From the NCBI GenBank assembly GCA_009103225.1, contig RHPI01000401.1:184300-248299 (forward strand): a stretch of 64,000 nucleotides of DNA. Direction: 5' to 3'. The stretch comes from Chlorokybus atmophyticus (lineage: Eukaryota; Plantae; Mesostigma and Chlorokybus algae). Under the pieces are notes generated by a model, which made no database searches, was not told where the DNA came from, and saw nothing but the letters and a program-made list of their open reading frames with translations. Of this stretch, positions 10,864 through 64,000 are shown piece after piece; the first letter of the stretch is position 1, and every line of letters begins with the position of its first letter. Both the position numbers and the translations under genes were made by a program.

Positions 10864-11387
10864 CCCAGATCAAGCTACAATCTACCACTCCACAACCACA
10901 CGTCTCTGGCCACAGCTGAGGCACACTCCACACCACTCGCGTCAAGCGATCCCAAGACAGCCAAGCCGCTGACAATCACACACGCAGCCCCCGCGTATAT
11001 CCCCAACAACCCGCACGTCGCCGCCGCCGCCACCGCCGCCGCCGCCACGTCAGACCGTGACGGTGGAGCCAAGAAAACCCTAGATAACCAGTACATAACG
11101 CTACCTGAGCACGTTGACTGACCTTTGTTCGCCGCTGCTACGCACGTGAACGTGACTCACATTTGCAAATCTGCAATAGCGCACCTCATCGAGTAACCCA
11201 GCTTGGGTGACGTGATCAGTGCTGCGAACGATTACGATGATCTGGATGACGTAACCAGAACTCGTTTGGTGCTATTTTCGGCAACACACAAAAGAAGGCG
11301 GCGGCGGTGTCGTCGTCGCTACCCTCCTCACTCATCTCTCGGTGCTGAGGTGAAAGAGACATATCAGCCGACACACGCACGCGTGCG

Positions 11388-13452: not shown

Positions 13453-13900
13453 CAGAAAGATACGTGTTGTGGTGAGGTAATTTGTCAGCGGTGAGATAGG
13501 CTAGAGCTAGGCTAAGGCAATCTGCATGTATCAGAACCAAGCAGTTGCAGTGTCACGACGAACATCACCTTAGAGCAGGTTGGAAACAGTGTTGGTGTGA
13601 CACATACAAGCACTAACAGGTCATCTGAGATACAGCGATTGAACCACGCACGGACAAGGCAGGGTTGCGTGCGTGCATGCATGCATGCGTGCGCGTGTTG
13701 CACACGTGCAACTGGTTCGCATCCACAACCATGGCAGGCTTGTGTGTGGTCATCAGAGCTCCTTCATCTCCAGCATCTATTAGTCGCCCTCTCCGTGCAG
13801 TATCTCAACCCGCAATCGAGTATCTATCCCAACAACCAAATGCGCTCGCTCTCAAATCTCCTCAACACGTGCTGCGACCTAGTCAATACTCCCAACCATG

Positions 13901-24000: not shown

Positions 24001-24707
24001 CAACAATCGGTCTCCAAGCCCATATGGCAGAGGAGGAGGAGGTCCTGGCTCTCGCTCGCCCTCACCCACACCCTACAACCCTGCTGTCACGCTGGCCAAT
24101 GGCGCCCACCGCATGCTGCAGCACAACCTCGGCGCGCTGCCGCAGCGGCCCGGCATGGCAACGGCACAGTTTGCGCAGGGACCCTCGGCGGGGCAGCCGG
24201 GCTTTAGTGGCGGGCGAGGGCGCGGGGGCGTGCTGCCTGCACCGCTTCACGGTCAGTACGGCCAACCTATGCAGCCTCCTCCATATGGGTATGGAATGCC
24301 TGGAGCATCACAGCCACCACTTTATGACCAGTATCATGACAGATCAATGCAACGTCCACAACAAGACCGCTATGCCTGGCAGGGCGCAGGTGTGTTAAGT
24401 TGATGTCATGCATTGCCTAACGTGTGCCTCTGGCTGTGTGTGGTTGTGTACACGCTTACTAACTCATTGCCATTGTTCAACAGGGTCGCCGCTTCCGTAT
24501 GGGCCTGTGCCACCATCAATACCCAACGCAGGATACCCCCTGTTGCAACCACAGCAGCAACATCCGCACCAACAGTTCCAGCATCAACAACAAAGACCCG
24601 GGTTTGCACGACCTCCTCCGCACGCAGGCATCGGTAGCAACAACTACTACAACGCACTGTCACGACCACCGCAGCAGGGACCGCACTACCCCCAGGGACG
24701 TAGGTAG
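21078..24707 (+). CDS. XRN2: 5'-3' exoribonuclease, plant XRN2/3/4 family, 4 exons (21078-22178, 22382-22864, 22979-~24389, 24484-24707)
   Basis: [51 protein letters not shown] knuckle [47 protein letters not shown]. Confidence 0.96.
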
Positions 24708-30193: not shown

Positions 30194-31651
30194 GTACTAC
30201 ACTCTCTTGTGCTCCATTGCTAGACAGCATGCAATGGAAGTTCAACGAGAGCATGAGGATGACGGCAATGATTGGCCATTCTGCAGATTGTCTGTCGAAT
30301 CTACTTGCAGTCTTGTGTGTTGCATTGTGTGCAATGTGTGTGTTGCTGTCGAACACTCTGTGCTGAACATCGTGTGCATGACAGCCGCAACTAGCACCCA
30401 CATGACGTGCTTGTTAACAGGAGAACGGCACGAGCGTGTTGCCATTACGGAAGTAGATTGCCTCAGCAGCGCTGCAGCAACTGGCTGATACCACACAGTT
30501 GGCACCTGAAGGGCAGTTCCTTGCATTGCAGCTGCGCTCGGCTCTGCAGGTGCAAAGAATCGAGGCTCTGCATGCCAGCCAGGGGAGCGCCACAGGCACG
30601 TGAGCTGATGTGCTTGTAGACGTGCAGGCATAGGTGGACCAGATACATACATGACTCTTCTGAACGACGCAGGAGAGGCAGGTTGCGCCATTGCCGCAGC
30701 TTGTCGACATATACGCAAGTGGCCTACAGCATCGTGTCCGGACTGCGGTGACCGCGGCCGGCTGACCGGCTTGAAGAGTACCTCAAGGTGGCCTTCGGTT
30801 TCCCCTGCCAGTACATGTTGGCTGCGTTGTTCTATGACCATGGAGGTGACGTGTACATGGATGATCTGTTTGGAGAGAAGCATCCTGATGCCGATGATGT
30901 TATCAACCTTCGCCAGAGCCCATTGAAAATGTGCTGGAAGTGTAACAATTGGGGCCCGACCACTAGGCTATGGTAGTAAAAGACACTACTATGAGTGAGG
31001 TTTGTCACAATTGATGTAACGATGCTCGTGCTCACATACACAGCACACAAGTCATACAACACATGTGTGCAGCTGAGCACAATCTTCACACTGGAACCTT
31101 GCCTTCACTCGCGCACGCACGCACGCGTCGAGCGCGCACACGCACACGAACACTACTACTTCTCACGCCAAGCAAGAACGCAGCAGTGTGCCTTGGACCA
31201 CAACTCCCTCAAGCATGCACCAGCATACTCACAGCAGAGAGCAGAAAACAAAGTTGGTTGCATTACACAGGGTTTTTCTATTTATACAAGCACTAGGAAG
31301 AAATAGCCTAATTAACAGGCATTTCATTATTCACTACCAAATCTAAAGGCAGGTCCAAGTGCAGGCTCCCCGCCACGCGCGTTGGGCCTTCGGCGGCTGT
31401 GTGACTGTGCACTCCGCGTCACCTGGCACTGCACAGCGCGTGTCCAGTCAGCGGCTGTGTCACAACCGCGTGGCAGGTGGGTCACGTCGCCGAATTAGCT
31501 GCTGTCGAGCAGGTCGCAGGCGAGTCGCGCGCGGCAGCAGGGGCAGGCGCCACATGGGCTTAATAAAGCTCATAAAAGCCCTCATCAAGCCAGCAAAAAA
31601 GGCAAAATAAGTACTTTATGTACAATAAAATACAAACAATGCCCCAGGCTG

Positions 31652-34600
31652 TTACACCCCTTCCCCCCCGGGGGAGCTTCGTCCTCGAAGCTGACGACTG
31701 CCTCCTTTGGCCTTGTAGTCTTGCAAGACCTGTTTGGCATTGGTAAAGCTCTCCTCGGGCTCGTATGTCGCCTCGTGCATTGGATAGCCACGCCACTTCA
31801 CCAAATACTTGCGCACGCCTCGGATCAGCTTGTCCGTGACAATTGCTTCCACTTCCCACTCAGCCTCACCTTCACGAACCACATCTGGAGGCGGACGAGC
31901 TGGTGGCTCCCCTCGATAACCTTTAAGAAGCGAGACATGAAAAACAGGGTGCACATGCATGGTATTGGGCAGCTCCAGCTTGTAGGCCACCTTCGAGATG
32001 ACCTTGATCACTTTAAAGGGCCCAAACCATCGCTCACTCAGCTTGCGCACCCCCGTGACCAGCTGCACATGCTTGGTTGAAAGCATTACAAGGTCACCCT
32101 CCTCGAACACAACATCCTTGCGACGCGCATCGGCGTATTGCTTTTGCCGGTTTTGCGCCACAAGCAGAGCCTCTCGAGCTGCCTTGGTAATGTCGGCACA
32201 CCTTTCAAGAAAGCCGTCCACGGCCTCCACATCTGAACTTTGCATGCTAGGCACCCACGCCGTCAATGGCGTCAATGGATGTTGCCCATAGTTCATAAGG
32301 AAAGGTGTCACGCCCGTGCTTGCACTCTTGTGGTTGTTAATGGTGAACTCGATCAGCTCCAGCATGTCTCCCCAATTGTCTTGCCGGCTGTTCACATAGC
32401 ACCGTAGCATGTCTTCGATGACGCGGTTGGCGCGCTCCGTTTGGCCGTCCGTTTCAGGGTGGTACGCGGTGCTGAACTTCAAGCTCGTGCCTAGAGTTGC
32501 GTGGAGAGCTCTCCAAAAGTTGCCAGTAAACCGCGGGTCTCTATCACTGATAATGCTTCTTGGAAGGCCATGAGAGCGCACCACATGCTTGATGAACAAC
32601 TTGGCAGCCTCGGGAGCTGTGCAAGTCTCCGTACATGGCGCCAATCGCACCATTTTGCTAGTCTTGTCCACAAACACCAAGATAGCATCATGCCCTTCAC
32701 GTGTCCGTGGCAGCCCCGTGATGAAGTCAAGAGTAACTTGCTCCCACTTCGTCAAAGGTATCGGCAATGGTTGGCAGCAGCCCACTGGCGCGTTGATTGC
32801 TCGCCTTCACCCTTTTACAAGTGTCGCACAATGCCACATAGTCCTTAACGTCACGATGCATCTCCGACCAGAAAAATTTCTGTTTCAACAAGGCTAGTGT
32901 CCGTTCCAGCCCTTAATGACCAGCCATTGGCACATCATGCGCTTCCTTCATCAATGCCACGCGCATGTGCGCAATGTTGGGTATGTACATGCGATCGCCA
33001 TGCCATAGCAGCCCGTCCTTCATTGCCCAAAGGCCGCTATGTTCAGTCCCTTTCTCCAACGCCTCAATGGTCTTCTCCCCGACCGCGTCCTCATGCAACA
33101 AGGCACGGATCTGGTCAATCCACTTGGGCTGCACTTGCACCACCGTTTCAAGCGCGTTGAGTTGACGGCTTAATGCGTCCGCAACCTTATTTGAAGAGCC
33201 CGGCTTGTACTTCACTTCAAAGTCGAAGAGTTGGAAGAACTCGAGCCAACGAGCTTGCCGCCGTGAGAGGTGAGGCTGCGTTTGAAGGTACCTTAATGGC
33301 GAGTGGTCCGTCTCAAGTGTGAACCGCTTGCCTTCAAGGAAACAACGCCATTGCCGTAGCGCTAGCACCTGCGCCAGCAATTCCTTCTCATGAACGGGGT
33401 AGTTGAGCTCAGCCCCGCTCATCTTCTTGCTGAAATAGGCCACCGGTTGCAAGCCGTTGCCGTGATCCTGCTGCAAAACAGCCCCAATAGCCTTGTCGGA
33501 CGCATCACACGCCACCACAAAGGGCAATTGCATGTTGGGATGCAGCAGCACGGGAGCCGATGTCAGGGCCTCTTTCAAGTCGGAAAATGCCTTTGTTGCA
33601 GCCTCCGACCAGCTCCAAGCCACCCCCTTCCTCAACAATGCCGTCAATGGTGCCGCCAAGTGCGAAAAGCCCTTTACAAACTTACGATAGTAGCCGGCAA
33701 GCCCTAGGAACGACATGACACCCTTCACGTCCTTCGGGGCAGCCCAAACGCGCACCGCGGCAAGCTTGCTTGGATCTGCGTTGATTCCTTGCTTGGATAC
33801 AATGTGGCCAAGGTACTCTACCTCTTCAAGCAAGAAGCGGCACTTGTTGAGCTGAGCAAACAACTTGTGTGTACGTGAACGCTGCATCACCTCGTGTAGC
33901 AATGCCACGTGCTCTCTCTTGCTTTTTGTGTACACAAGGATGTCGTCGAGGTACACTAGCACGCCCTTGCCAATCAGATCAGCAAAGACCTCATTCATCA
34001 AGGATTCAAAGGTTGCCGGAGCATTTGTCATGCCAAAGGACATCACCAACCACTCATAGTGGCCATAGCGAGTGTTGAAAGCCGTCTTCTCAACGTCTTC
34101 GGGCGCAACACGGATCTGATGGTAGCCACCAGCTAGGTCCAAGCTTGAGAAGAACTCAGCACCCTCGAGCTGCTCCAACAACTCATCAATGCGTGGCAAA
34201 GGGAACACATTCTTCTTGGTGATGTTGTTGAGTGGCCGATAGTCGATGCACATGCGCAAGGCTCCGCTCTTCTTACGTACAAATAGGATAGGTGCACCGT
34301 AAGGAGACTTGCTGTGCCTGATGTACCCACGTTGTAGAAGGTCCTCGACTTGGCTCCTCGCCTCTTCGAGTTCAGCCGGAGACAACTTGTACACCGGTCG
34401 GTACGGCGGCTTGTGCACGCCCTCTATCAGTTCCACACGGTGATCAACACTTCGCGTGGGTGGCAGACCAGCTGGTAGCCCATCCACCATGACGTCTTTG
34501 AACTCTTCAAGCAACCTCTGCACCTCGGGGTCCTTCGAACTCTCCGAACCAGTGCCGACCAGCTCCAAGTCCGACTTGGGAGGTGTCTCACGCACCATGC

Positions 34601-35339
34601 ACAGCCATGCATCCTTCACATTGTTCCCGGACCAGATCTGCTCCATCTTGGTCTTAGAAACTTGTGACACCAGCTCTGGAACCCCTCCCCTTGAGCTAGA
34701 AGCATGTTGTGGTGCAGCTTGCTGGCGCGCCGTCGTGTCGTGCGCGTCACGCGCATGCAGCACATTGCTAGCAGCCTCGACGCAGCTCACACGCTCTTGA
34801 ACCACACACGCGCCTTGCATTGAAGCATTGAAGCACATCAAAACCTCACCACCAGCTTCCGGGGTAGTGAGCACCCGCTTCCTCCAATCAATGGCGGGGT
34901 TATGTGACCAAAGCCAAGGCAGCCCCAAAATGCCATCAAAGCCGTTGTTCAGCTCGATGCAGCAAAACCGTAGGCGATCCTTCATCATCCCCACGTGCAT
35001 TTCAAGCTCTTTGCTTTGCTTGGAAGCTCCTCCTGCTGGCGCATAGCCGTCCGCTAGAGCCACCGAGCCGGCATTTGCCCATGACAACCACTTGTGCCGA
35101 CGCGCAACCTCACGACTCATGAAATTGCTGTTCGCGCCGCAATCCACCAGCATCTTGCACTCCATCCATGGCCCATTGCCCTCACGGATCAGAGCCATGA
35201 CTCCCAACAGCTGCCTCGCCTTGTCGGGCACTCGAACCATACCGCTTTGCGTTGCCGTTGCGCACATGCCGCCAACCGTCAACAACGCTTCCACGCCAGC
35301 CGCTGGACATTCAACATCATAGTGAGGCTGCATCACCAC
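31652..35339 (-). CDS. Chromovirus Pol (protease, RT, RNase H, integrase, chromodomain), broken by a TAA at 32913-32915 and a frameshift near 32777
   Basis: LVDCGANSNF, RMCIDYRPLN, YLDDILVY, CDASDKAIGAVL, H..C..C zinc-binding region, TAYHPETDGQTER, GPFKVI, WEVEAIV...YLVKWRGY. Confidence 0.95.
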
Positions 35340-35359
35340 CTCAGCAGGAGCCTCTCCAG

Positions 35360-36406
35360 CTACTGAGGTGAGCCGTTTCCCGGCTGCAACATCTCCTCCT
35401 CCACCATGTTCACGCGTCCACCGCTGCGAGCGTTGCGGGCATGTGCAGCAGACTTTGCCTTATAGATAGGGCAGTTGGAGCGCACGTGATCAGCAGAAGA
35501 GCACTCCCAGCACTTCCGAACAGCCTTGGCAGCCTCCCGACCCTTTGGGGCCTTCATAGCAACATGGAGCGCACCCAATTCCATTGGAGTTGGTCCCAAG
35601 CCAGCCCCCTGAGTTGCTGCAGCTCCCGAACCAGCCCCAACAGATGCGTATGAGCGATACGAACCTCCACGGAAGTGATTGTAATGTCCACGATCAGTGT
35701 TTTTGGCAGCCCCCTTGAAGTACAACACGTCCGTGCGCTCAGCAATGCGAATGGCCTCCGCGAGAGTCTTGGCGTCACGAAGCTCAACTTCCTTGCGACA
35801 AAGAGTCTTCAACCCGCGCGTGTAGCGGTCCAGCTGCTCCTCCTCAGTCATGTTCGGTACAGAGAGCACAAGACGCTGAAACGCAGAGGTATAGGCCATC
35901 ACGGACTGCGTTTGCACAAGCGTAGAGAGCTGGTCGCGTGCCGTCTTCACACTCTCCACCGGTACGAACTGTTTCTTCACCTCAGCAGCCAGCTCAGCCA
36001 CGGTAGTGAAAGGAACCTCAAGACCAGCTTCCACACGAGCACAACGATGACGCCACCACACAAGTGCAGCTCCCTCAAAGAAAGTAGCAGCCACATCGAC
36101 ACGGAGATGTATAGGTACCTCGGTGAGCTTTAACCATGTCGAAACGGCAAACACCCACTCCTCCACACAGTCACCGTCCCTCTGACCCTTGAATGGCTTT
36201 GGTTTTGGTAGCTTCACATGACGAGAGGCTGATGGGGCAACCACAGGAGCTGTAACGGGCGTGGACGCGCGCGCTTGCGCCATGGCTTGTTGAAATTGTG
36301 CCGCTTGAGCTTGGGCAGATGCTTGGACACGTTGCAGCTCCTCATGAGCAGCTACCAGCACTTGCTGAAGCTCCACAACACGTGCATCATCCATGGTAGC
36401 GTCCAT
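35360..36406 (-). CDS. Chromovirus Gag with CCHC zinc knuckle
   Basis: Retrotrans_gag-like core (LVQTQSVMAYTSAF), GPTPMELG and CWECSSADHVRSNC. Confidence 0.92.
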   Translation of the reverse strand: MDATMDDARVVELQQVLVAAHEELQRVQASAQAQAAQFQQAMAQARASTPVTAPVVAPSASRHVKLPKPKPFKGQRDGDCVEEWVFAVSTWLKLTEVPIHLRVDVAATFFEGAALVWWRHRCARVEAGLEVPFTTVAELAAEVKKQFVPVESVKTARDQLSTLVQTQSVMAYTSAFQRLVLSVPNMTEEEQLDRYTRGLKTLCRKEVELRDAKTLAEAIRIAERTDVLYFKGAAKNTDRGHYNHFRGGSYRSYASVGAGSGAAATQGAGLGPTPMELGALHVAMKAPKGREAAKAVRKCWECSSADHVRSNCPIYKAKSAAHARNARSGGRVNMVEEEMLQPGNGSPQ

Positions 36407-39400
36407 AAACAGAAAAATACCTCACACACCAAAGAGATAGTTAATATCCCCTTAAAACAAGAAACCCAACCCCTCCAAGGGCTCCGATACCACTGTAACG
36501 ATGCTCGTGCTCACATACACAGCACACAAGTCATACAACACATGTGTGCAGCTGAGCACAATCTTCACACCGGAACCTTGCCTTCACTCGCGCACGCACG
36601 CACGCGTCGAGCGCGCCCACGCACACGAACACTACTACTTCTCACGCCAAGCAAGAACGCAGCAGTGTGCCTTGGACCACAACTCCCTCAAGCATGCACC
36701 AGCATACTCACAGCAGAGAGCAGAAAACAAAGTTGGTTGCATTACACAGGGTTTTTCTATTTATACAAGCACTAGGAAGAAATAGCCTAATTAACAGGCA
36801 TTTCATTATTCACTACCAAATCTAAAGGCAGGTCCAAGTGCAGGCTCCCCGCCACGCGCGTTGGGCCTTCGGCGGCTGTGTGACTGTGCACTCCGCGTCA
36901 CCTGGCACTGCACAGCGCGTGTCCAGTCAGCGGCTGTGTCACAACCGCGTGGCAGGTGGGTCACATCGCCGAATTAGCTGCTGCCGAGCAGGTCGCAGGC
37001 GAGTCGCGCGCGGCAGCAAGGGCAGGCGCCACATGGGCTTAATAAAGCTCATAAAAGCCCTCATCAAGCCAGCAAAAAAGGCAAAATAAGTACTTTATGT
37101 ACAATAAAATACAAAAAATGCCCCAGGCTGTTACACCCCTTCCCCCNATTTACCCCAATTCGTGACATTCCTCCCCAATTTAACCCATAAGTTCCATAAT
37201 CCAATGAGGCACTAGCCCACGTCGCCGTGTTTGCGACCGTAGCACGATCGGTCTGCTCGCGGCCTGTTGGATCCGGCCTACGAATGGTCTTGACCGACCG
37301 AACGGCCATTCTCACCACGCGACCTGCCATTGGGCCGCGACCGCTTACGCGGCGTTAAGTTGAACTGGCTCGGCGCGCAGGTTGTAATCCCGCGCCCAAC
37401 CTAGGGCAAGCCGCCCCAAATGTTTTGTTTTTTGGCCTTGGATCTGCCTCAGTTCCCTACGGGAATTAAACCTGAGACGTCAAGCTCCGTTACCATTGTA
37501 ACAATTGGGGCCCGACCACTAGGCTATGGTAGTAAAAGACACTACCATGAGTGAGGTTTGTCACAATCTATCCCAATTCGTGGCAGGAAGGGCTGCTTGC
37601 GTCCACACAGCATGAATTGCAATGCACGTTATTGCAATACATTCAACGACTGCATCAGGTAGTCTTAATGGGTTTAACCGTGACACCACACGTCACTCAG
37701 ACTGAGGCATACTGCACGGTGCCATAACGAGTGGTACTTTACGGATTGTACACAAAGGATACGGCCGGAGCATAGCCACCCAGCATTGCTTTCAGCTGAA
37801 AGCATTGCTTGTCATGGACTAGCACGCAAATTGGATGTAGCATGACACTCTGGCAACCAACTAGAGTTGCATGCTGCTGCTGCTGCCTGCTCGGTCGTGC
37901 ATTGCTGATGCTTTCATGGCTGCTTAGCAAGCTTGCAAAGACGGCAAGATTGTGATGAAACATGTCGTTGAGTGACCTCCATGGAAGACGGCCTGTGCAA
38001 GGCTTTCTGAAGGTTGATCATGCAGATGGTCTGGTAGTTAGCACCTCCGCATATCCCCCCTAATTGTGCAGTTACCGTTGTTGACTGTCTGTTCAATTTA
38101 TGCGGGTTCCACACGTAATGGATAAGCCTATGCCAAGACGCTTCAAGCCAAGTTGGTGAGTGCATCGAGGAGTTGCAGAAGGCCCTTCGGGATACGACAT
38201 GTCTGGTGGCAGCCTGACTTACTTTACAGTCTGCATCATGTTGCACCGCAGTGATGGATTGTCCCCTCTACGATACACATTGCACCTTGCGTCTCTGAAC
38301 CTAGCATTACGAGCCATGGAGTTGGCAATGGCACAGCAGTTGGAACCTCCCAAACTCGCTCGCAGCTGTAAGCTCCCACTGCCATGTTCAATTGCAACTT
38401 GTTGTGCACACAAGGAAGTTTCTGAGTTAACAAGTGCATTGATGTATGGCTCTGCAAGCAAGTCGTAAACGGTCAGCCAGTCGCGCAACTGGCATTGCCA
38501 TGCACAATTAAGCCCCGCTGAAAGTGCCATAATGCCCCATTTGCAAGATCTGCCACGGGTTTACGCCCTTAGGTATTACAATCGTTAACTTTATTATAAA
38601 TATATATTATAGTGCTGATGCTTGAGATTGACTGCTTGATTGGCACTAGGAGTGTTACTTGTGTTGAGGTCTGGCAACATGGGCTGATATGCTCAACTGC
38701 AGCACACATCAACTATGTTCACACATTCCTGGCTCTTGCACCAACATTTGTGCTGCGCATGGGCAATGATGCCGCGGTGGAGGTAAAAGCACTCAAAGCT
38801 GCAGCAGCATCACTACGTACTATAGCTGCCAACATGGTGGTCTGTTTATGCGCTATGATGTAGAAGTGGATGCGGAGTTACTCAATTGGAGCTACGAGAA
38901 AAATTGCAAAGCTAGTGGTGGCCAATTGTCAAGCAATGCTAAAAATGTCCACTTGGCGCGTCGTAGCACCAAGCTTAAGCGCATATATCAACATTAAGAT
39001 AAGCACCTTGACGTTAAATGGTCTGCTGCAAATTATCTAGGTAGGTGCTTTAATACGTTTCACGCAGCATCGTTGTTATAACATGATTACATTCTTGTTG
39101 ATGTTAATTGTATTGCACGCTGCCTTGTGCTAATGTCAATGCAGGGCCAAGCCCTTGCAATCAGGACCAGTCATTATGACTTCATTGAGCAAATGGCACG
39201 AACGGATGCACATGCAGCATGCGACATACCAGCTGCGTCAACATAAGTTACACTGCCCGAAGATACGGATTTATATAAGCTGATGTGCAATGATTCCACT
39301 GCAAGGTGCGGCCGGTTGTGAAGTTAGAACCTTGCAACGCCAGCGCGGCCAGCGACAAGAGCTCGAACGACGCCGTTACCGAAATGTGTGGAGATAACAA

Positions 39401-39467
39401 TCTTAGAGAACAATTGTGCTTACAGTAATTGATACAACTAATCTATGCACGTTGATGTGACTCAACT

Positions 39468-39550
39468 GCCGAGATGGCCGAGCGGTCTAAGGCGCCACGC
39501 TCAAGACGTGGTCCACAATGTGGGCGTGGGTTCGAACCCCACTCTCGGCA
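39468..39550 (+). tRNA. trnL-CAA: tRNA-Leu(CAA), intronless, 83 nt
   Basis: Acceptor GCCGAGA/TCTCGGC+A; D-loop TGGCCGAGCGGTCTAAGG; anticodon arm CCACG-CTCAAGA-CGTGG; variable arm CCAC-AAT-GTGG; T arm GTGGG-TTCGAAC-CCCAC. Confidence 0.96.
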
Positions 39551-39553
39551 AAA

Positions 39554-46460: not shown

Positions 46461-47189
46461 CACCCTCGTACCGACCAGCAGCCTTGGAGCTGAGCTGAGC
46501 TGGGTCGGAGCGGATGCTGAGCTGCATGCTTGGAGGAAGAGAAGGAGGCGGCGGCGCAGCTGCTGCTGCTGGTTTACTTGGAGAAGCCAGTGGCGTGAGC
46601 TACTGCTGCTGCTGCTGAGCTGCTTATGAGAAGAAGCTGCTTCTGCCAAGAAGCAGATCTGGCAAAAATTGCACATCAGCTGGAGCTGGAGCTGAGCTGC
46701 GGCAGGTTGGATGAAGCTGTCTGGATTCGTGGGTTCTCGAGAACAGTGAACTGAGCTGCTGCTGCGGAGCGGAGCTATTGCTGCTGCAAAGCGAAAGTGC
46801 TGCTCCTGCGGAGCAAAACTGCTGCTGCTGCGGAGCGGAGCTGCTGCTGCGGCGGAGCGGAGCTGCTGACAAGCTGCTGGGGAGAAGGAGTTATTTCTGC
46901 TCACGAGCTCTTGCTGGTAAGGCCTATGCTAGCTTGTTATTGTTGCTTGGTTTGCTCTGTCAGTGAGGCTTGGTCGAGAGTGTCTCCTTACAGTCTGTTA
47001 GCTTGCTGCTGGGCGTCTTGCATTCAGTCTCACTTGTTCAAGGTGAATGCTTGTAGTTGCTCCGTTTTCGTTTGCTAAATCCAAGATATCAGTTTCCGCT
47101 GCTGCCAATTATTAGCCCCCAAGTTGTCCGTCATATGCTGTCACTGTTAGCAGTATTCAAGTCCGACTTACACGCTATCATCTGCAGCC

Positions 47190-50100
47190 ATGGCAGGACG
47201 CATTGTTCAACAGTCTGCTGTTCTGCGCGAGCGTGAGCAGTTTGATGAAACGCTTGCACTAATCAAGCATGCTGGTGGGAAGCCACGCAAAGCCAGTGTA
47301 CGTGCTAAACGGTCACTGCTTAAAGAGATGAGGGCCGCCCAGCAAGCGCGTCCAACAAACATCAGCCCGCACCTCACTGAAGGAGGAGGTGACTGTTGAG
47401 ATCCGGACTAGCCCACTCGGCTAGCCTCGCGCGAGGCTTGCCGAGTGGGCTAGTCCGGATCTCAACAAAAGGTGCTGCCCTAGCGACCTGAGTTCAAGTC
47501 CCACCGGACGCACTGCAACATGGCAGTGAGAGAGAGCCCGATTTTTGGCACTGCTCCATAATTCGGCGCGGCAAGTGAAGCCGCCGCAGTAGCTCGCGCG
47601 CTCGTTGTAAGACAGCCAGGGACGGAGGCTACCGCGCGCCAAGCACGCCTAGGGACAGGCCGCTGCTTGACGCGGGGGGAGGTGAATTGAACAATAAAAG
47701 GCCTTAAAACGGCCGGGTCGCAGGGCCCCACCTTTTGTTGAGATCCGGACTAGCCCACTCGGCAAGCCTCGCGCGAGGCTAGCCGAGTGGGCTAGTCCGG
47801 ATCTCAACAGTGACTTGCAGCTGCCTGCACCTGCGTCTGCCTTGGAGCCCGAGCCTGCGCCTGAAGATCAACCACACCTGTCCAACCAGCAGACAGCAGA
47901 ACAATCTTCTCCAGAGATGCCGGACTTTGGAGCCGCCGAGCAAGCTGATCATTCTAGCAACCAACAGCCTGAGCCTGAGCAGCCTCCAACCTTCAGTCGC
48001 GACCTTTGCCTCTGCTCCAAGTGCAAAGGCTTGGTAAGTTGCTTCGCTTGGCCTGCGCTGATGAACAAGTGACCATGCATGCACGTTGCTTACACACCCT
48101 TACTGTGTCGCAGATCATGCAGCCGCGCTTGGTCATCAATGCGCACTTAGCCAAAGACGAGGCGGCCAGACGGCTGAGGAGCATTCCCACTGTGCAACCC
48201 ACTTTGGACAGCTTTGATGCAGACAAGTTGCCTGATCTGCAGCAGACGTCTACAACTTACCTGGACAAGATAATCGAGATCTCATCCATCCTAGACGAAG
48301 CTGGAGTCTCGCAGGACTGCTTCAACAAACTGCTCCCTGTCCTCTTTAAAGGCGAAAGCTCCCTGATGGCTTTGGCTAAGAAGGGATTGTTCGATGAGAA
48401 GAGCGAAGGCTTCAAGCTGCCTACTACTTGCAAGAGCCTGATTGGCATGTTTGAGCGCATGGGGATGCCTTCAACACTGCATTATTCTGTCTGTGCCTGC
48501 GGCCACCTGTTCGACAAGCCCTATCCAAATGCTGAGCTCGTTGTGCAAGACGAAGACTCGGTGCGCTCCAGCTACCGGCAGCGCGAGAAGGAGCGCAAGG
48601 CCATGGCAAAAGAACAGTGCCCAGACTGCAGTCAGAAACGCAAGGAAGGCACGAGTTTCTACTACCTCCCTCTCAGGTCAAGGTTGCAGCTTATGTTGGG
48701 CGTGCCAACCATCTGTCATCAATGGCTCCAGGCCTGGCTGCACCGGGAGCGGTGGCTTGACAAAGATCCAGCAATACCTCCTGCCAGTCAACATGAAGTC
48801 TGGGATGGAGCTCGTATGAGGGAGATCTCCGACTTCTTCAACCCCAAGAAGNACTGGCTGCCAGTCAGATGCGCGCCAACCATCTGTCATCAATGGCTCC
48901 AGGCCTGGCTGCACCGGGAGCGGTGGCTTGACAAAGATCCAGCAGTACCTCCCGGCAGTCAACATGAAGTCTGGGATGGAGCTCGTATGAGGGAGATCTC
49001 CGACTTCTTTAACCCCAAGAAGACCTACTGGCTGCCAGTCAGATGCGAGCACTGCCAGACAGTTCACAGACCAGGCCACCACTTCACTGAAGGCGACAGT
49101 GATGATGGGCCGCAGTGGAGGTTTCGGTGTCGCACCTGCGAGCAGGTCACCTGTCCTTTCAAGCATATGGCCTGCGGTGACCCGAGGAACCTCATCTTCA
49201 TTGGCCACTGGGACGGCTTCACCACAGCCAGCACCAGCCCCCGCAACACGCTGATGATCAACGTGGCCATCTTGAACGGAGGCAAGTTGTTGAGCGCGCA
49301 GACGTCTTCGCTTCTTCCTGTGGGTTTTGTGCCCAAAGATCAGCTTCCTAAGGGGGTTGACAACATGGACCCCTTTCTGAAGCCACCTATAGACGAGCTC
49401 GAATCACTGCTGCTTGAGGGCTTCACCTGCAATTATGCCCTCCCCACCTCTAAAGTTTGCCCTGACCTGCAGTCTCAAGCAGCCGGTGCTACCACGCGCT
49501 TGCGAGCGATGCTGCTCATCTAGGCTGGTGATCACCCAGCCCAGTGTCAGTTACTGAAGATGAAAGATGGTGGCATCTTGGGCTGCCGCAGATGCTGGTG
49601 TAAGGCCCAGCCCTACATGGAAGAAGCCCAAAGGCCTGTAAAGCGCAAGGCTGCTCCAGAGTCCGACGACGAGCAGGTGTCTGCTTGCAAGAAGGCTGTT
49701 TCCAAGTCCAGCAGCCAGGCAAAGTCTGCTAGCAGGAATAAGAAGCAGGCGGCTGAGAAGAAGAAGAAGAAGAAGAAGCAACCTGCCAGCAAGAAGCGTG
49801 CTGCTGCATCAACCAGCAATGGTCCAGCTGGTCCTAGCAACTCCCAAGCAGTGGAGCTCAACACCTACCAGAAGAAGGTCTACCGCTACGATCAGAACTT
49901 CATGCACTCAAGACATCCATGGCCCGAGAGAGAAGAACAGGAGACTCTGACCAACATTGATAAGCTGGAGACTGCTGCTACCCCTGCTATTGGAACACAA
50001 GTCAGCATGGAGACAGGTGTCACAGGCAGGAGCCAACTGTGGCGCCTCTACCATGCCTATGGCTTCAGCCCACTCAAGGACGTGGTGTACGACGTCATGC

Positions 50101-51970
50101 ACACCTTGTGTGAAGGTCTAGTGAAGGGCCTCTGCCATGCAGTTTTTGCAAAGGGAGCGCACGAAAGGGTGGTGGATGTTCCCTTGGTGGAGGCCAGGCT
50201 TAAGGACTTCACTGCAGCCTTGATCAAGGAAATGCGATCCGGGCGCTCTCCAAAGGGGATTACAGACAGGCTGGGCTGGTGGAAGGCAGAAGACTACCAG
50301 AAGTTTATGCAGGACTTTGCACCTTACGTGACAACGGGCTTGCTGACTTCGCACATGCGCGACGTCTTCATGTCCTTACACAAGCTCATCTGCCTGTTCT
50401 ATCGCCACTCCCGCTTCAATGGCTGGACCGAAGACACCCTCAGACTGGCAGACAGCTTACTGCGTTACTGGCGTATCAACTCAGAAGAATGCTTTGGCCA
50501 CAACTTGAGACCTCTAGAGCATGCTGCTGGAGCAGGTCATCTGCTGGACGATATCTTCCGCCACGGCAGCCATGATGTGTACTGGTGCTACGTCTTCGAG
50601 CGCGCTGTCTCAGATCACTTGGAGACCAGCACCAACAACAAAGAGTATGAGTTCAGCTACATACATCGACACGTACGCTTGTGGTACGAGCGGCTGCTTA
50701 CTGTCTTGCGCGAAGACCAGCGCACGGGCATGGTCTTTGCAACACGCGTTCAGCTGCAGTTGCGGTCTCATCGCGTGTCCAGCGGTGTTGGAGGTTTCTG
50801 GTACGAAGCACCCAGTCAAAGCAAGGCTTTGGAACTCTGGAAGAAGGCTGAGACGTGTCCACACCGGTCTGAGTCACAAGACATTCTTGCTCGAGGCATA
50901 CTTATTGGCCAGCTGCCAGGTCAACCCACACCACTAAGCTCAGCGGTTTGAGATGGTCAGCAGGCACATCAGAGCAGATGCTAGGCATCTCGTGCAGAAT
51001 ACGGCTTACCACTACAAGGCTGTGCTGCTTAATGGGGAGATTCACAGGTTAGATTGCTTGCTATTGTTGTCCTCACACGTGCTGTTGTGCTTGCTGTCTG
51101 ACTGCTACCAAGCTTTGTGTTCTACTGTGCAGAACAGAGTCGCCCCTAGGCATTGATAACGTTGTAACAGACGACCACAGTTACATTGCTGTGAAGCAAG
51201 TATTTGTGCATATCTACAAGAAGAAGCCTCAAGTCTTCATTGCTGGTCGCCAATACGTCATGTACACAGACACAGCTGGTGCCTTGTACCGTGACCTTGA
51301 CACAAAGTCGGCCCTGGTGAAGGCTTTGAGCTCCGACGAAGTATGTATTCCAGCTGACAAACTTCTGCGAAAGTTCATGCTGCTGCCCAGTCGGCAGACC
51401 AAAGCTGGTTCCAAGGCTGACAGAGCTCCGCAACTAGCATATGATCTGCAGAACCCTGACCTGCATGTCAAGGCCGGCGATGTTGATGTCCCCATCTGGC
51501 CTAAAGTCGGCGAGGTGGTGCAAATACGCGATCAAGCCAAGTCCGTTTGGGACTTGAAGTTGCCCACAGAACCTGCCAACGAGTTCTGCATGGAGTTGCA
51601 GGAGCAACTCAACGACAGCAATGCACGCGCAACCCAGCAGCCACGTCGCAGTAAGAGAGCAAACACGCGCAAGGCACCTGCCGTGGATAAAGACTCACAA
51701 GAAGACGCCTGCGACGAGGATGATCCCGGACCTTGGTATGCTGTGGTTAGGAACATATCAGAGGAGGACAAGCAGGTTGAGGTCGATTACCTTACACGCA
51801 TCGCGCCCGGTGTCTGGAGGGTGAACGACAACCACACTGGCAAAGTTGTCGGGAGGCTTACCTTGTGCAAGCTCATGCATTGGGTCAAGCTTGATCATGA
51901 TACTTGGCGCGAGCAGGGCCGGTCCTACCCTCACATCAGCAAGTTTCGCAACTACCATGTGTACGCGTGA
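47190..51970 (+). pseudogene. CACTA transposase (TnpD / Transposase_21-like), spliced and disrupted
   Basis: CLCSKCKGL|IMQPRLVINAHL, HYSVCACGHLF, FYYLPLRSRLQLML, EVWDGARM, HWDGF, DPFLKPPIDELESL, LLI*AGDHPAQ, YDVMHTLCEG. Lesions: 416-bp insert, TAG at 49521-49523, +1 frameshift near 50950. Confidence 0.85.
47394..47809. mobile_element. 416-bp non-coding element with palindromic 74-bp terminal inverted repeats and a 5-bp TSD
   Basis: Repeats at 47394-47467 and 47736-47809 are exact reverse complements of each other and each is self-complementary; TSD GTGAC at 47389-47393 and 47810-47814; removing it restores the transposase frame (GGD/LQLP). Confidence 0.95.
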
Positions 51971-52244: not shown

Positions 52245-55200
52245 TGTTGAGAGTCATTCCTACATACGATCAGCATCGACCCTCCACATAGGAGTAGAAG
52301 GTCGTAAGGACGAGCACTAGGTCCGGACTTAGCAAGATGGCGTCGTCGGACCAGACTCCGGACTCCAGACAGGAGCTTTACTAACTGCTTCGTATCTCCG
52401 CGTATACTTACTCATATTAGGCGTGTGAGAGCTTGTTGGAAAGCTCTAGTTGTAAGAAAGACAACGCAGCTTAGAACGCGTCAAAAGGCTCAGTATAGCT
52501 TACGCAGTGCTTGCAAACGTAGACGTGTGTGTAACGGGCTGGTATAAGAACCAGCGGACAACTTGTAATAGATGAATGTGATGTGACTTGTGTATGCTCT
52601 GGTGGCGGTAGCTCTGTCTCTGTGTGTCTATGCTTGCCTCAACTACATGTGCATGCTAGTCCTTCAACAGGTTATGGGCCCACACTACGCTTGAGGAGTG
52701 TGAGACTAGCTTGTGTGCATAGTAGTTCTACACTACGGTAGCTTGTTGGTAGCAGAGCCTTGGGTGTCAACTGCAAGAAAGGCAGGCTCGACAGAAATGG
52801 AGGCGACCTACGACAAGGGGCAGATTGCAAAGCTGGACACCGACAACTACAACACATGGTGCGTGGAGATGAAGGCCTTGCTCATCCACAAGAAGGTGTG
52901 GAAGTACGTTGATCCGAAGGCACCACCACCAACACCAGGAGCGAACACTGTGTGGTCAGAGCATTCAGCAGAAGCACACTCTTTGCTTGTGTTGAACAGC
53001 AAACCGCATCACTTTCCCATGCTCACTGCATGTGAAGATGGTAGACAAGCTTGGGAAAAGCTATCAGCCGTTTTCAGAGCCAAGAACAATGCCAGAAAGT
53101 TGCATCTACGCAAGCAGCTCAGCGCACTCAGGAAGGAGGCAGCAGAACCCATCACAAAGTATGTTGCGCGCGCGAGAGAGCTGTGGGCGGACCTCATCAA
53201 CGTCGGCCACAACATGGGGGAGACGGAGGTAGTGCTGGCCATTGTTGCAGGGCTACCAGCAGAGTACGAGGTCGTCGCAACCCTGCTGGAGACGTCATCA
53301 TCGGAGTTGACGTTGGACGATGTGCTACCGAAGCTGCTCACCGTGGAGCAGAGGGTTGTGAAGAAGGACGAGCAAGCTGATGCCGTCGCCTTCCACACCG
53401 GCAAGCACGCAAAGAAGAGCAACCATGAAAAGAAGTACAAGGGCAACAAGCCGGGCAATCCTCGTCACAAAGACCTCACATGCCACTGGTGTGGTTGGAA
53501 GGGGCACATTGTGAAGGACTGTAGGAAGAAACAACAGGGGCAACCTAGAGCAAGCACCAGCAACAGCGGCAACGAGCACCAACACAAGGAGAAACATGTC
53601 GCCTTCACTGCATCCAGTTCGAGGGCGGGCACAGCTTTCTGGGTGGTGGACTCTGGCTGCGATCGTCATCTCACACCAAACAAGGAGGTGATGGAGGGCT
53701 ACAGGAAGCTGACGTCCACAATCAAGGTGGCGGGCTTCGGTGGCGAAGTACTGGTGGCTGAGGGAGTTGGCAACGTACGACTCCAGTGCAAGGTTGGTAA
53801 CACACTACGCGAGGTGTTGTTACGCAACGTCCTGCATGTTCCTAAGGCTATTGCGAGTCTATTCTCTGTGAGGGTTGCGGAGCGCTTAGGCGCGGAGATC
53901 TTATTTCGGAAGGGTGGCTGCTCAGTCATCCTTGATGGGGTCGTGCACATGGTTGGAATCGCTGATCCGGGAGGGCTCTACCACGTGGAGCAGCCTCAAG
54001 ACAGAGACATTCAAGCCATGGTGGTGAAGGACAAGGAGTCGCCAACATTGTGGCATCGGAGGTTCGGGCATCTCAGCTACGTCAACCTCACTCGCCTTGT
54101 CGCTGAGAAGATGGTCAAGGGCATCTATCTCAGCACAGAAGAACTCAAGAATGCATCAGGTGCACTTTGTAAACCATGCCTAGTTGCAAAGCAGCATGCT
54201 ATGCCATTCCCATCATCCTCTTCTAGCAGTCAGCATCCTTGCGAGCTTGTGCACATGGATGTCTGTGGCCCTATGCGCATTGTGGCGAAGGGAGGGGCCA
54301 GGTACTTTGCTACGTTCCTCGACGACTACAGCAAGCTGTCCATCATCTTTCCATTGACGCTCAAGTCAGAAGTTGCTGGAGCTGTGCGCACAGTTGTGGC
54401 CTTGTTGGAGACCCAGTCTGGCAACAAGATGAAGGCAATGAGGAGTGATCGAGGAGGGGAATACATCAACAAGGAGTTGAAGGAGTTTTTCGCAAGCAAG
54501 GGCATACGCCACGAGACAACGGCACCCTACACCCCGCAGCAGAATGGAGCAGCTGAACGCCTCAACAGGACACTCTTGGAGCGTGTTCGAGCTATGCTCA
54601 ACGACACAAAGATGGAAGACAGTTTGTGGAAGGAGGCGGTACTCACTGCCAACTACATCCGCAACAGGTCTCCGGTGAGCTCAGAGCAGAAGACTCCGTG
54701 GGAGCACTTCTATGGAGCCACACCAGATGTGAGTGGTATGCGTGTGTTTGGATGCACGGCATATGCACTAGTGCCTAAACAGCTCAGGCACAAGCTGGAG
54801 CCGGTCAGCAAGAAGGGCATCTTCGTTGGCTATGAACCGGGTTCCAAGGCTTACAGGATCTTGCTCGAGGACACTCAGAAGATCATTGTGAGCAGAGAGG
54901 TGGTTTTCCACGAGGGATTATCACAACCAGAAGCAGGCTTCTTTCCTGAAGATGAAGCACAGCCGGAGCATCCTGAAACAGTGGAGGCTACAGGCAAGGC
55001 CATCATCGACGATAAGGGTGAGCAGGACTCCACTGTAGCAGACAAGCAGTCGCACCTGCAGCAGGAGCACGCAGCTCGGAGATACCCAGTGAGGGAGAGA
55101 AAGGCACCTGACTTCCTACACAAGGCACACGTCGCCAGTGTGCACAATGAGGAGCCAAGCACCTACGAGGAGGCATTGTTAGCACCAGATGCGGAGCAAT

Positions 55201-57143
55201 GGCAGCGTGCTATGGACGAGGAGATTGCGTCACTCCATGCCAACAACACTTGGTCACTGGAGCAGTTACCGCAAGGAGTGAAGACCATTCCAGTGAAATG
55301 GGTCTTCAAGGTGAAGCGTGATGGTCAGGGCAACATTGAGCGCTACAAGGCAAGACTGGTGGCAAAGGGCTTCTTGCAGCAGGAAGGTGTGGACTTCAAC
55401 GAAGTGTTTGCACCTGCAAGTAAGCATACCACCTTCCGTGCACTGCTAGCTATGGTTGCTGCTGAAGACCTAGAGCTGCATCACCTGGATGTGAAGACTG
55501 CCTTCCTCTACGGAGAGCTGGAGGAGGAGATCTTCATCGAGCAACCACCTGGATATGAAGAAGGGGAGAGAGGCACAGCGTGCAAGCTGATCAAGGCACT
55601 GTACGGGCTGCGACAGGCACCGCGTATGTGGCACATCAAGCTCACCAAGGAGCTGGAGGCACTTGGCTTCACCGCATCCTCTGCAGACCCTGGGCTCTTC
55701 ATCCATGCAGACAACAAGGTCTGGCTGCTCGTGTATGTTGATGATATCATCATCACCGCCAGGCAGGTGCACCACCTGCAGGAGACGAAACTTGCTCTAC
55801 AGCAAGCATTCTCAGTTCGTGATCTTGGAGAGGCCAAGTGGTTCCTTGGCATGGTGATTGAGCGCGACAGGGCGGCTCGCACAATCAAGATCAGTCAGGA
55901 GCAGATGGTGAGAAGACTCGTCACCAAGTTTGGGCTCACTGAAGCGAAGACCAAGACCACACCGTTGGCACTTGGCACTGCCCTCATCAAGGCAAAGGAT
56001 GAGGAGGTACTCGACAAGGCTCAGTATCCATATGGTGAGCTGGTAGGCAGCATGCTCTATCTGGCAGTGTGCACACGTCCCGATGTTGCACATGCTGTGG
56101 GAGTACTTGCTCGCTACATGTCTGCACCGAGCATGGAGCACTGGAGAGCAGCAAAGGGAGTACTACGCTATGTTGCTGGGAGCGCAACAGTTGGCATCAA
56201 GTTTGGGAGCGGGAGCACTGAGTTGGAGGGCTACTGCGACTCGGACTTTGCTGGTGACCTCAACAGCAGGAGGTCCACTACAGGCTATGTCTTCAAGCTG
56301 AACGGAGGCGTGGTGAGCTGGAACAGCAGGCTGCAGCCAACAACAGCAGCATCTACATCAGAGGCTGAGTACATGGCAGCGGCAGCAGCAGTGAAGGAGG
56401 CACTCTGGCTTCGCAAGCTCATGGCAGACTTGGAGCACCCCATGGCGTGCATCGTCATCAACTGTGACAACCAAGGAGCCATCAAGTTGTTGAAGCACCC
56501 TATCGCCTCGGCAAGGACGAAGCACATTGATGTCATGCATCACTTTGTGCGTGACAGAGTCACAAGGAAGGAGGTGGAGTTCCAGTACTGCAACACCGAG
56601 GGCATGCTGGCGGACTTCATGACAAAGCCATTGTCACCGCTCAAGTTCAAGACTTGTTGCGCAGGACTTGGCATCTGTGTTTGACTACAAGAGCAAGCGT
56701 TGGAGGTCAAGCTGCTCGCGTGGGAGTGTTGAGAGTATTCCTACATACGATCAGCATCGACCCTCCACACAGGAGTAGAAGGTCGTAAGGACGAGCGCTA
56801 GGTCCGGACTTAGCAAGATGGCGTCGTCGGACCAGACTCCAGACTGGAGCCTTACTAACTGCTTCGTATCTCCGCGTATACTTACTCATATTAGGCGTGT
56901 AAGAGCTTGTTGGAAAGCTCTGGTTGTAAGAAAGACAACGCAGCTTAGAGCGCGTCAAAAGGCTGAGTATAGCTTACGCAGTGCCTGCAAACGTAGACGT
57001 GTGTGTAATTGGCTGGTATAAGAACCAGCGGACAACTTGTAATAGATGAATGTGATGTGACTTGTGTATGCTCTGGTGGCGGTAGCTCTGTCTCTGTGCA
57101 TCCATGCTTGCCTCAGCTACATGTGCATGCTAGTCCTTCAACA
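52245..57143 (+). mobile_element. Ty1/copia LTR retrotransposon
   Basis: LTRs at 52245-52669 and 56727-57143 (TGTTGAGAG...CTTCAACA); PBS GGTTATGGGCCC; PPT-like CGCGTGGGAG; single gag-pol ORF. Confidence 0.97.
52797..56684 (+). CDS. Copia Gag-Pol polyprotein, open frame
   Basis: CHWCGWKGHIVKDC, WVVDSGCDRH, LWHRRFGH, VHMDVCGP, QQNGAAER, YKARLVAKG, LLVYVDDII, GYCDSDFAGD, RTKHIDV. Confidence 0.97.
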   Translation: MEATYDKGQIAKLDTDNYNTWCVEMKALLIHKKVWKYVDPKAPPPTPGANTVWSEHSAEAHSLLVLNSKPHHFPMLTACEDGRQAWEKLSAVFRAKNNARKLHLRKQLSALRKEAAEPITKYVARARELWADLINVGHNMGETEVVLAIVAGLPAEYEVVATLLETSSSELTLDDVLPKLLTVEQRVVKKDEQADAVAFHTGKHAKKSNHEKKYKGNKPGNPRHKDLTCHWCGWKGHIVKDCRKKQQGQPRASTSNSGNEHQHKEKHVAFTASSSRAGTAFWVVDSGCDRHLTPNKEVMEGYRKLTSTIKVAGFGGEVLVAEGVGNVRLQCKVGNTLREVLLRNVLHVPKAIASLFSVRVAERLGAEILFRKGGCSVILDGVVHMVGIADPGGLYHVEQPQDRDIQAMVVKDKESPTLWHRRFGHLSYVNLTRLVAEKMVKGIYLSTEELKNASGALCKPCLVAKQHAMPFPSSSSSSQHPCELVHMDVCGPMRIVAKGGARYFATFLDDYSKLSIIFPLTLKSEVAGAVRTVVALLETQSGNKMKAMRSDRGGEYINKELKEFFASKGIRHETTAPYTPQQNGAAERLNRTLLERVRAMLNDTKMEDSLWKEAVLTANYIRNRSPVSSEQKTPWEHFYGATPDVSGMRVFGCTAYALVPKQLRHKLEPVSKKGIFVGYEPGSKAYRILLEDTQKIIVSREVVFHEGLSQPEAGFFPEDEAQPEHPETVEATGKAIIDDKGEQDSTVADKQSHLQQEHAARRYPVRERKAPDFLHKAHVASVHNEEPSTYEEALLAPDAEQWQRAMDEEIASLHANNTWSLEQLPQGVKTIPVKWVFKVKRDGQGNIERYKARLVAKGFLQQEGVDFNEVFAPASKHTTFRALLAMVAAEDLELHHLDVKTAFLYGELEEEIFIEQPPGYEEGERGTACKLIKALYGLRQAPRMWHIKLTKELEALGFTASSADPGLFIHADNKVWLLVYVDDIIITARQVHHLQETKLALQQAFSVRDLGEAKWFLGMVIERDRAARTIKISQEQMVRRLVTKFGLTEAKTKTTPLALGTALIKAKDEEVLDKAQYPYGELVGSMLYLAVCTRPDVAHAVGVLARYMSAPSMEHWRAAKGVLRYVAGSATVGIKFGSGSTELEGYCDSDFAGDLNSRRSTTGYVFKLNGGVVSWNSRLQPTTAASTSEAEYMAAAAAVKEALWLRKLMADLEHPMACIVINCDNQGAIKLLKHPIASARTKHIDVMHHFVRDRVTRKEVEFQYCNTEGMLADFMTKPLSPLKFKTCCAGLGICV

Positions 57144-61585: not shown

Positions 61586-61945
61586 TTGGGTACCAAGCTG
61601 AAGACCTTCGCTCATCTTTCTTGCAGCAACCAGTCTAGCTTCCATGCAGCTTCCTTGCAGCCGCCAGTCTAGCTTCCTGCTAAAAGTCTGACTTCTTCCT
61701 AACAGTTTAGCTTGCTACCAGCAGTTAGCTTCCTGGTAGCAGTTAGCTTCTTGCAAACAATTGGAGCCTATTCTAGTACTAGTTAAGAGTACATGGTACA
61801 ATGTAAACTCCATATGAGGTTAAGATTTCTTTACTATGAAAACTTCCTGCAATTTGCCTGCACATGCCTGCTATATTGTGCTGCTAATTTTGGAATGAAT
61901 GGCTGGGCCGTTATCGGCATGACTGCTGGTCCACCGAGGTCGACA

Positions 61946-62430
61946 CACCAGGAGCTGTGCCGTCAACGGCACGACTGCTGCTGCTGCTGTGCCGACGTCG
62001 GCAGAAGTGCTACTGTGCCGAAGACAGCAGAAGCGCTGCTGTGCCGAAGTCGGCAGAAGCGCTGCTGTGCCGAAGTCGGCAGAAGCGCTGCTGTGCCGAA
62101 GTCGGCAGAAGTGCTATTGTGCCGAAAATGGCAGGATCGTTGCTGTGCCGAAGACGGCAGAAGCGCTATTGTGCCGAAAGCGGCATAAGCGCTGCTGTGC
62201 CGAAGACGGTAGAAGCGCTACTGTGCCGAAGACGTTAGAAGTACTGCTGTGCCGAGGTCGGCCCAACGCAGTTTGCCCCGTCAGCGACAGTAACCAGCTT
62301 GTGCCGGCTGACAGATGGTGACTTACGATCCTCTGCCGGCACAAAGCGACTTGTGCCGTCTTGGGAGAAGAACTGCTCGCAGAACTCGAAGGCAGGTGCC
62401 GCTGACGGCACAACTGGCTTGTGCCGAGAA
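61946..62430. repeat. Right subterminal array of the CACTA element; core is ~10 tandem 26-bp units (TGTGCCGAAGTCGGCAGAAGCGCTGC)
   Basis: Period of 26 read directly (e.g. GTGCC at 62041 and 62067); each unit contains the inverted pair TGCCG-N4-CGGCA. Confidence 0.9.
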
Positions 62431-63919: not shown

Positions 63920-64000
63920 TGTTGAGAGTATTCCTACATACGATCAGCATCGACCCTCCACACAGGAGTAGAAGGTCGTAAGGACGAGCACTAGGTCCGG
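63920..64000 (+). mobile_element. Start of a third LTR of the same Copia family, truncated by the window end
   Basis: TGTTGAGAGTATTCCTACATACGATCAGC... matches the LTRs at 52245 and 56727. Confidence 0.95.

Follow-up and report, generated by a model that had tools for sequence, protein, structure and literature searches.

Elements of the Ginger2/TDD type are recognized by TGTNR ends, terminal inverted repeats (TIRs) of 50–180 bp, and target site duplications (TSDs) of 4–5 bp (PMC2836005, PMC10045372), and metazoan Ginger2 elements prefer AT-rich targets of the form RTATAY (PMC2836005). For TDD-4 and TDD-5, a TSD of 5 bp was described (PMC2836005, PMC3845634, PMC10045372). The TSD lengths given for the related groups are 4 bp for Ginger1, 4–5 bp for Ginger2/TDD, 6 bp for Polinton, and 3–6 bp for LTR elements (PMC10045372). 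Non-coding derivatives of Ginger2, referred to as Ginger2_NA MITEs, with TGT ends and lengths of 531–651 bp, have also been published (PMC3845634). Furthermore, the GingerRoot/IS3EU elements, which encode an integrase-related transposase and feature TIRs of 100–150 bp and occasional TG...CA ends, were found in the plant Selaginella (PMC6839031). In routine curation, on the other hand, units of 50–500 nt with TGT...CA ends and a TSD of 4–6 bp are annotated as solo LTRs (PMC8969392).

The element described here was found in a 64-kb stretch of DNA, which was analyzed as a whole and is called the window in the following. It is well established that strand transfer by DDE enzymes of the integrase family is marked by TG...CA ends and by a short, fixed-length duplication of a near-palindromic target.

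Structure of the Miniature Element

The miniature element is non-coding, has a length of 416 bp (positions 47394–47809 of the window), starts with TGTTGAGA, and ends with TCTCAACA. It is composed of the following parts, none of which is assigned to a strand:

47389–47393, no strand: left copy of the TSD, GTGAC, read directly and identical to 47810–47814
47394–47809, no strand: whole element, 416 bp, with TGTTGAGA...TCTCAACA termini
47394–47467, no strand: left terminal palindrome, 74 bp, consisting of 37-bp arms back to back with one T:T mismatch
47468–47488, no strand: left inner part of the TIR, 21 bp, pairing with 47716–47735 with two substitutions and one indel
47489–47715, no strand: unique core, approximately 227 bp, GC-rich
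47716–47735, no strand: right inner part of the TIR, 20 bp
47736–47809, no strand: right terminal palindrome, 74 bp, with one A:A mismatch, the exact reverse complement of the left palindrome
47810–47814, no strand: right copy of the TSD, GTGAC, read directly

The observed structure is real and unusual. Both 74-bp ends are palindromes with zero spacer, the 37-nt arms being 97% complementary, and the hairpin-palindromes with one T:T or A:A mismatch each, as proposed in the preliminary description, were confirmed by pairing and folding. As single-stranded DNA, each end folds with a single position left unpaired and reaches approximately −44 kcal/mol (z about −14), and the whole element, treated as a single strand, adopts an end-to-end fold (z = −21). 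Apart from these two palindromes, scanning of the complete 64-kb window revealed none whose arms exceed 19 nt, and the 18-nt terminal word occurred four times in the window versus 0.05 occurrences expected. The motif GGACT is located at position 12 in four out of four arms.

Compared as inverted copies, the two 74-mers are identical at 74 of 74 positions with zero mismatches, whereas their comparison as direct copies, located 342 bp apart, resulted in 72 of 74 identical positions (97%), the two differences lying at mirror positions. The inverted repeat continues further inward to a total of approximately 95 bp, and all three differences are confined to the inner 21 bp. The calculated chance of finding three out of three differences within the inner 21 of 95 positions is approximately 0.01 if differences were evenly spread. 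Because the mismatch is mirrored and the inverted repeat extends inward, the ends are considered to be inverted by descent and not direct, in accordance with the preliminary description, which had put the inward extension at approximately 20 bp.

The longest ORF of the element encodes 83 aa, and the Copia-type PBS and PPT words searched for were absent in either orientation, so that the earlier statement on missing ORF, PBS, and PPT holds as well. The mirrored mismatch, the inward extension of the TIR, and the lack of a PBS and PPT likewise uphold the classification as an inverted-repeat unit and not as a TRIM. The bases immediately inside the 3' repeat are pyrimidine-rich in both orientations.

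Screening of the element for RNA genes revealed no tRNA (ARAGORN) and no Rfam family, and the core was without an RNA-family match. Matches to Rfam microRNAs (MIR1437, mir-607, and others) were far below the gathering scores and reflect hairpin shape only. The possibility that the left arm and its flank derive from a tRNA or a SINE was rejected, since ARAGORN and Rfam were negative and the alignment with the tRNA-Leu of the window scored no higher than shuffled sequences.

Insertion Site and Host Gene

The element is inserted in the following gene:

47190–51970, + strand: host gene, multi-ORF, carrying the element insertion

The TSD GTGAC, also recognized in the preliminary description, is perfect and exactly 5 bp long, and the bases next outward differ between the two sides. 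The target is near-palindromic (GT-N-AC) and lies in GC-rich coding sequence. The element sits inside an ORF, and the open frames on both sides differ by the phase expected for an insertion of 421 bp, corresponding to the 416-bp element and one copy of the TSD. The host gene is interrupted once by the miniature element. No paralogue featuring the empty site was found within the window.

Searches with the ORF pieces of the host gene, each taken singly and unjoined, yielded no Pfam match and only two remote homologues of 32–37% identity, one of them showing a weak Tnp2 match (E = 9.5e-4). The Tnp2-matching relative resides in a metagenome scaffold (L001) and features the same ORF order; conservation of the N-terminal pieces of the host gene was not found in this scaffold. 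The host gene probably belongs to another mobile element, for which it would encode a transposase-like protein. Its first large ORF contains a tandem duplication of 171 bp (48700–49022, 97% identical) located beside a single N, and a tandem array with a period of 22 bp is present approximately 500 bp upstream of the gene (46755–46868).

Neighboring Retrotransposons and Shared End Signals

The only integrases in the window are those of two retrotransposons:

52245–57143, + strand: Ty1/Copia element with one gag-pol ORF of 1323 aa, LTRs at 52245–52669 and 56727–57143
30941–37567, − strand: Ty3/chromovirus with gag, protease-RT-RNase H, and integrase-chromodomain in three separate ORFs (two interruptions)

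The gag-pol ORF of the Copia element, which is located 4.4 kb from the miniature element, is uninterrupted, and its LTRs (425 and 417 bp) are 94.6% identical. Its best relative in the protein collection is 53% identical. Within the window, this Copia element is the only integrase source with termini matching those of the miniature element; the LTR of the chromovirus starts with TGTAACAA. The 5-mers flanking the Copia element differ and no target duplication is visible; the element may be recombinant or located in a rearranged spot. At positions 63920–64000, the same Copia family is represented by the start of one more LTR, the third, which continues off the window end and is 97.6% identical to the start of the 5' LTR. 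In the chromovirus, a 71-bp copy of the LTR start is found out of order at 37497–37567, close to an N, suggesting nesting or mis-assembly.

The first 8 nt of the miniature element equal the first 8 nt of the Copia U3 end, as had been noted before, and the start of this LTR was placed at 52245. The reverse-complemented U5 end shares TGTTGA with the miniature element and, after a 4-nt indel, GGACTAGC; this match ranks within the top 0.2% of 2813 control 30-mers starting with TGT. For comparison, three independent Copia families from metagenomes with approximately 50% amino-acid identity were used. Their LTRs start with TGTTGAGAG, TGTTGAGCT, or TGTTGGAAG, end with CAACA, and are associated with the same PBS word. 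GGACT is present within the first 25 nt of three out of the six LTR ends of these families versus a background of 1.5%, where the nominal P value of 6e-5 is optimistic, since the motif was picked after being seen in the window. Because of the U3 and U5 matches and the recurrence of TGTTGAG and GGACT in these relatives, the ends of the miniature element belong to the signal family of the resident Copia lineage (TGTTGAG plus subterminal GGACT), a link that is stronger than initially claimed.

In the interior, the miniature element showed no similarity to the Copia LTRs in either orientation, nor to any other LTR compared. The stretch CTAG(G)TCCGGA, previously reported as shared with the interior of the Copia LTR, is indeed present, but amounts to an 8-mer with an indel, which is at chance level. 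By calculation, two sequences of approximately 420 bp would have approximately five 8-mers in common by chance when both strands are considered, and the shared word TCCGGACT was accordingly rejected as interior homology. The LTRs of all four Copia families (the neighboring one and its three relatives) possess inverted ends of only 5–6 bp versus approximately 95 bp in the miniature element, and LTR lengths in this lineage range between 265 and 546 bp. On one of the metagenome contigs (ERZ26692472:ctg47056, L002, positions 4152–14182), two identical related Copia elements form a tandem with a common middle LTR (LTR-internal-LTR-internal-LTR). Their LTRs start with TGTTGAGAG, as those of the Copia element in the window do, the proteins being only approximately 50% identical.

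Search for Further Copies

A second copy of the miniature element was not found in the 64-kb window. Exact and gapped patterns of the ends gave no match in viral contigs, metagenome contigs, and prokaryote genomes, and the 14-mers of the element matched none of the printed sequences in the searchable literature. Likewise, no similar architecture was present in the seven contigs fetched for comparison (approximately 79 kb), of which six carry related Copia elements, and the core was not similar to any other part of the window or to these contigs. With a single copy seen, family status, constancy of the TSD, and mobility of the element are putative. The earlier suggestion that a single hairpin may be mobile found no support, no solo palindrome being present in the collections searched.

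Comparison with Described Element Types

With regard to the Ginger2/TDD elements, TGTTG at both ends of the miniature element fits the TGTNR consensus, and its TIR of approximately 95 bp and its TSD of 5 bp are within the described ranges. However, the target GTGAC lies in GC-rich and not AT-rich sequence, the host belongs to the green lineage, as judged from its XRN exoribonuclease, no transposase partner was found in the 64-kb window, and the ends resemble Copia rather than Gypsy LTR ends. Moreover, each TIR of the miniature element opens with a 74-bp palindrome. GingerRoot/IS3EU elements differ from it by 6-bp TSDs, mostly TA...TA ends, and their nature as large coding elements. The small size (416 bp), the lack of coding capacity, and the presence of a TIR (approximately 95 bp in this case) are also shared with MITEs in general.

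Among retrotransposon derivatives, solo LTRs of Ty1/Copia elements resemble the miniature element in TG...CA ends, TGTTGAG start, CAACA end, 5-bp TSD, missing ORF, and a length within the range of the lineage, but differ in inverted ends of 5–6 bp instead of 95 bp, short inverted ends being typical of such LTRs though not strictly diagnostic; in addition, interior similarity and a full-length partner in the window are lacking. With TRIMs, the element has in common a length below 1 kb, the absence of coding sequences, TG...CA ends, a 5-bp TSD, and the reliance on the enzymes of a partner. Unlike in TRIMs, its terminal repeats are considered to be inverted by descent and look direct only by virtue of being palindromes, and a PBS and PPT are absent. 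The element also differs from tRNA-derived SINEs, as a tRNA-related promoter region was not found in it. Composite and foldback elements resemble it by two small inverted end-units around a core and by extensive self-complementarity. These families, however, depend on other enzymes and feature other TSD lengths, whereas the end-unit of the miniature element comprises just 74 bp and two end sites only.

In the preliminary description, the architecture was not recognized among the described MITE or TRIM families. This view needs qualifying, given that Ginger2-derived MITEs with TGT ends have been published (PMC3845634) and that curation would assign such a unit to the solo LTRs (PMC8969392).

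Proposed Origin of the Element

Tentatively, and at a confidence short of probable, we prefer the reading that the element represents a non-autonomous, non-coding, inverted-repeat (MITE-like) unit that was recently inserted by a DDE enzyme of the integrase family. This reading builds on features that were observed directly, namely, the structure of the element, its TSD, the phase-consistent insertion within an ORF, and end sequences resembling those of Copia-lineage LTRs. The element would move as DNA and would be inserted by an enzyme with an RNase-H fold, presumably a member of the integrase family, supplied in trans. As pointed out in the preliminary description, the element bears, in its termini and its 5-bp TSD, the hallmark of an integrase or transposase of the retroviral type. 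The enzyme would join the TG...CA ends to target strands cleaved 5 bp apart, leading to the GTGAC duplication. The functional module is predicted to be a 37-bp end site, namely, TGTTGAGA followed by GGACT at position 12, of which four copies would be present. Each 74-bp palindrome may then correspond to two end sites back to back and, hence, to a complete two-ended unit. Accordingly organized, the 416-bp element would resemble a small composite of two palindromic units around a 268-bp core, which may point to a composite origin. The hairpins would be a by-product of the back-to-back sites and not a replication intermediate. Copying through a local hairpin, as considered previously, is unsupported, and the mismatch pattern speaks against it. 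Fold-back regeneration in each cycle would make each palindrome perfect; in fact, both hairpins retain a mismatch, and it is the comparison of one end with the other that yields a perfect match.

The inverted-repeat reading is supported by the identity of 74 of 74 positions in inverted versus 72 of 74 in direct orientation, by the mirrored differences, and by the continuation of the TIR for 21 bp. Further support is provided by the perfect TSD at a near-palindromic target in combination with the preserved phase of the host ORF, by the absence of an ORF, PBS, and PPT, and by the agreement of the TGTNR ends, TIR, and TSD length with the Ginger2/TDD hallmarks, the non-coding Ginger2 derivatives providing a precedent (PMC3845634). 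It is preferred over a solo LTR because a TIR of approximately 95 bp is foreign to the LTRs of this Copia lineage. Moreover, reverse transcriptases delete direct repeats at high rates (PMC3187697, PMC3678115). Since the 74-mers are 97% identical as direct repeats and, thus, deletable during reverse transcription, the architecture may be easier to keep under DNA-level movement.

The inverted-repeat reading is weakened by the single copy seen and by the missing partner transposase, the integrases in the 64-kb window being those of Copia and the chromovirus only. The Copia-specific end motifs also count against it, because a solo LTR explains them more simply, and so does the GC-rich target GTGAC in view of the AT-rich preference of metazoan Ginger2. 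Reports on Ginger-type elements in the green lineage were not found in the searchable literature. Furthermore, excision of chromosomal DNA by a retrotransposon integrase is, to our knowledge, not known, which is a further point against the inverted-repeat reading. A more specific version of it, which we regard as unlikely, assumes that the 37-bp arm is a Copia-lineage end site and that the element is the miniature of an undescribed cut-and-paste transposon, the transposase of which descended from a Copia-type integrase. Such a transposon would be the Copia counterpart of Ginger, and the 74-bp palindromes would act as minimal units of two end sites, moving alone or, when paired, carrying the DNA between them.

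Alternative Explanations

A plain solo LTR is a serious rival to an integrase-type non-autonomous element. On this view, LTR–LTR recombination in an unsampled family of the Ty1/Copia lineage would have left the element behind as a solo LTR featuring an abnormal inverted repeat of 95 bp with palindromic ends, which is possible, albeit doubtful. The TG...CA ends, the 5-bp TSD, and the length of 416 bp compared to 417–425 bp for the neighboring Copia LTRs are in line with this origin. The same is true for the TGTTGAG starts, the CAACA ends, and the subterminal GGACT, which are common to the Copia relatives of approximately 50% amino-acid identity, and the required machinery is present in the genome, as represented by the Copia gag-pol in the window. 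The standard curation rule also gives this call (PMC8969392). However, the inverted ends of LTRs in this lineage comprise 5–6 bp and not 95 bp, the interior is unlike that of any LTR compared, and a full-length partner is missing in the window. In addition, a full element would contain four of the 74-mers, 97% identical as direct repeats, and reverse transcription would tend to delete them (PMC3187697). Considerably less credible is a retro-copied, TRIM-sized parasite of the Copia machinery, which would be transcribed, reverse-transcribed by means of its self-complementary ends (serving priming or regeneration), and inserted by the Copia integrase. We rate this scenario as rather improbable and know of no precedent for it. 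The Copia-lineage end motifs and the uninterrupted Copia ORF at a distance of 4.4 kb agree with it, and the perfect pairing of the outer 74 bp next to a diverged inner 21 bp fits end-to-end (panhandle) templating. Nevertheless, a PBS or PPT is absent in either orientation, the mismatch retained in the local hairpins indicates that these were not regenerated by fold-back copying, and deletion of direct repeats by the reverse transcriptase would erode the structure (PMC3187697).

Two further explanations were considered. It is very unlikely that the locus is not mobile at all and arose through palindromic rearrangement in place or faulty assembly, flanked by a 5-bp repeat by chance. The single copy and the isolated N bases in the window would be compatible with such an event, but, with the offset fixed, a flanking repeat matching at five of five positions is expected in approximately 1 in 1000 cases. 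In addition, the ends are exactly those of an LTR-type element, the host ORF keeps its phase relation across the insertion, and the ends are identical over 74 bp despite being 342 bp apart. Least probable of all, and hardly to be expected, is the integrated remnant of a hairpin-ended linear replicon of the rolling-hairpin or telomere-resolvase type, in which the T:T and A:A mismatches would represent flip and flop. A resemblance to such a replicon lies in the palindromic termini, each of which carries an asymmetric mismatch that is mirrored between the left and the right end. By contrast, the precise 5-bp TSD and the TG...CA ends are marks of DDE strand transfer, and neither a replication initiator nor a resolvase gene or any other ORF was found in the element. 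Relative to the terminus, the two ends do not differ in their state, and hence no flip/flop difference was seen, and the viral contig collection contained nothing similar.

Implications for Element Classification

The element is tentatively regarded as an integrase-type non-autonomous element and, as such, a variant on a known theme. If it represents a family, Copia-lineage end sites of the integrase type could serve an element bounded by inverted repeats. This family would then be a green-lineage, Copia-ended addition to the DNA elements using retroviral-type integrases (Ginger1, Ginger2/TDD, GingerRoot, and Polinton). A family of this kind would also imply a warning for annotation, since the rule by which TGT...CA ends with a TSD of 4–6 bp denote a solo LTR would misfile the element. 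If it is a solo LTR, it would be an unremarkable leftover, the ends of which happen to be duplicated in a curious palindromic manner.

Further Features of the Window

In addition to the elements described above, two genes were identified:

21078–24403, + strand: XRN2/3/4-type 5'-3' exoribonuclease with CCHC knuckle, in three long ORFs
39467–39551: tRNA-Leu(CAA), no other RNA gene being found in the window

Isolated N bases occur in the window, and the assembly is thus imperfect. A tandem array with a period of 26 bp is located at positions 61930–62319. The three XRN ORFs, also searched singly and unjoined, were closest to Viridiplantae proteins, with identities of 50–66% to those of land plants and Closterium.
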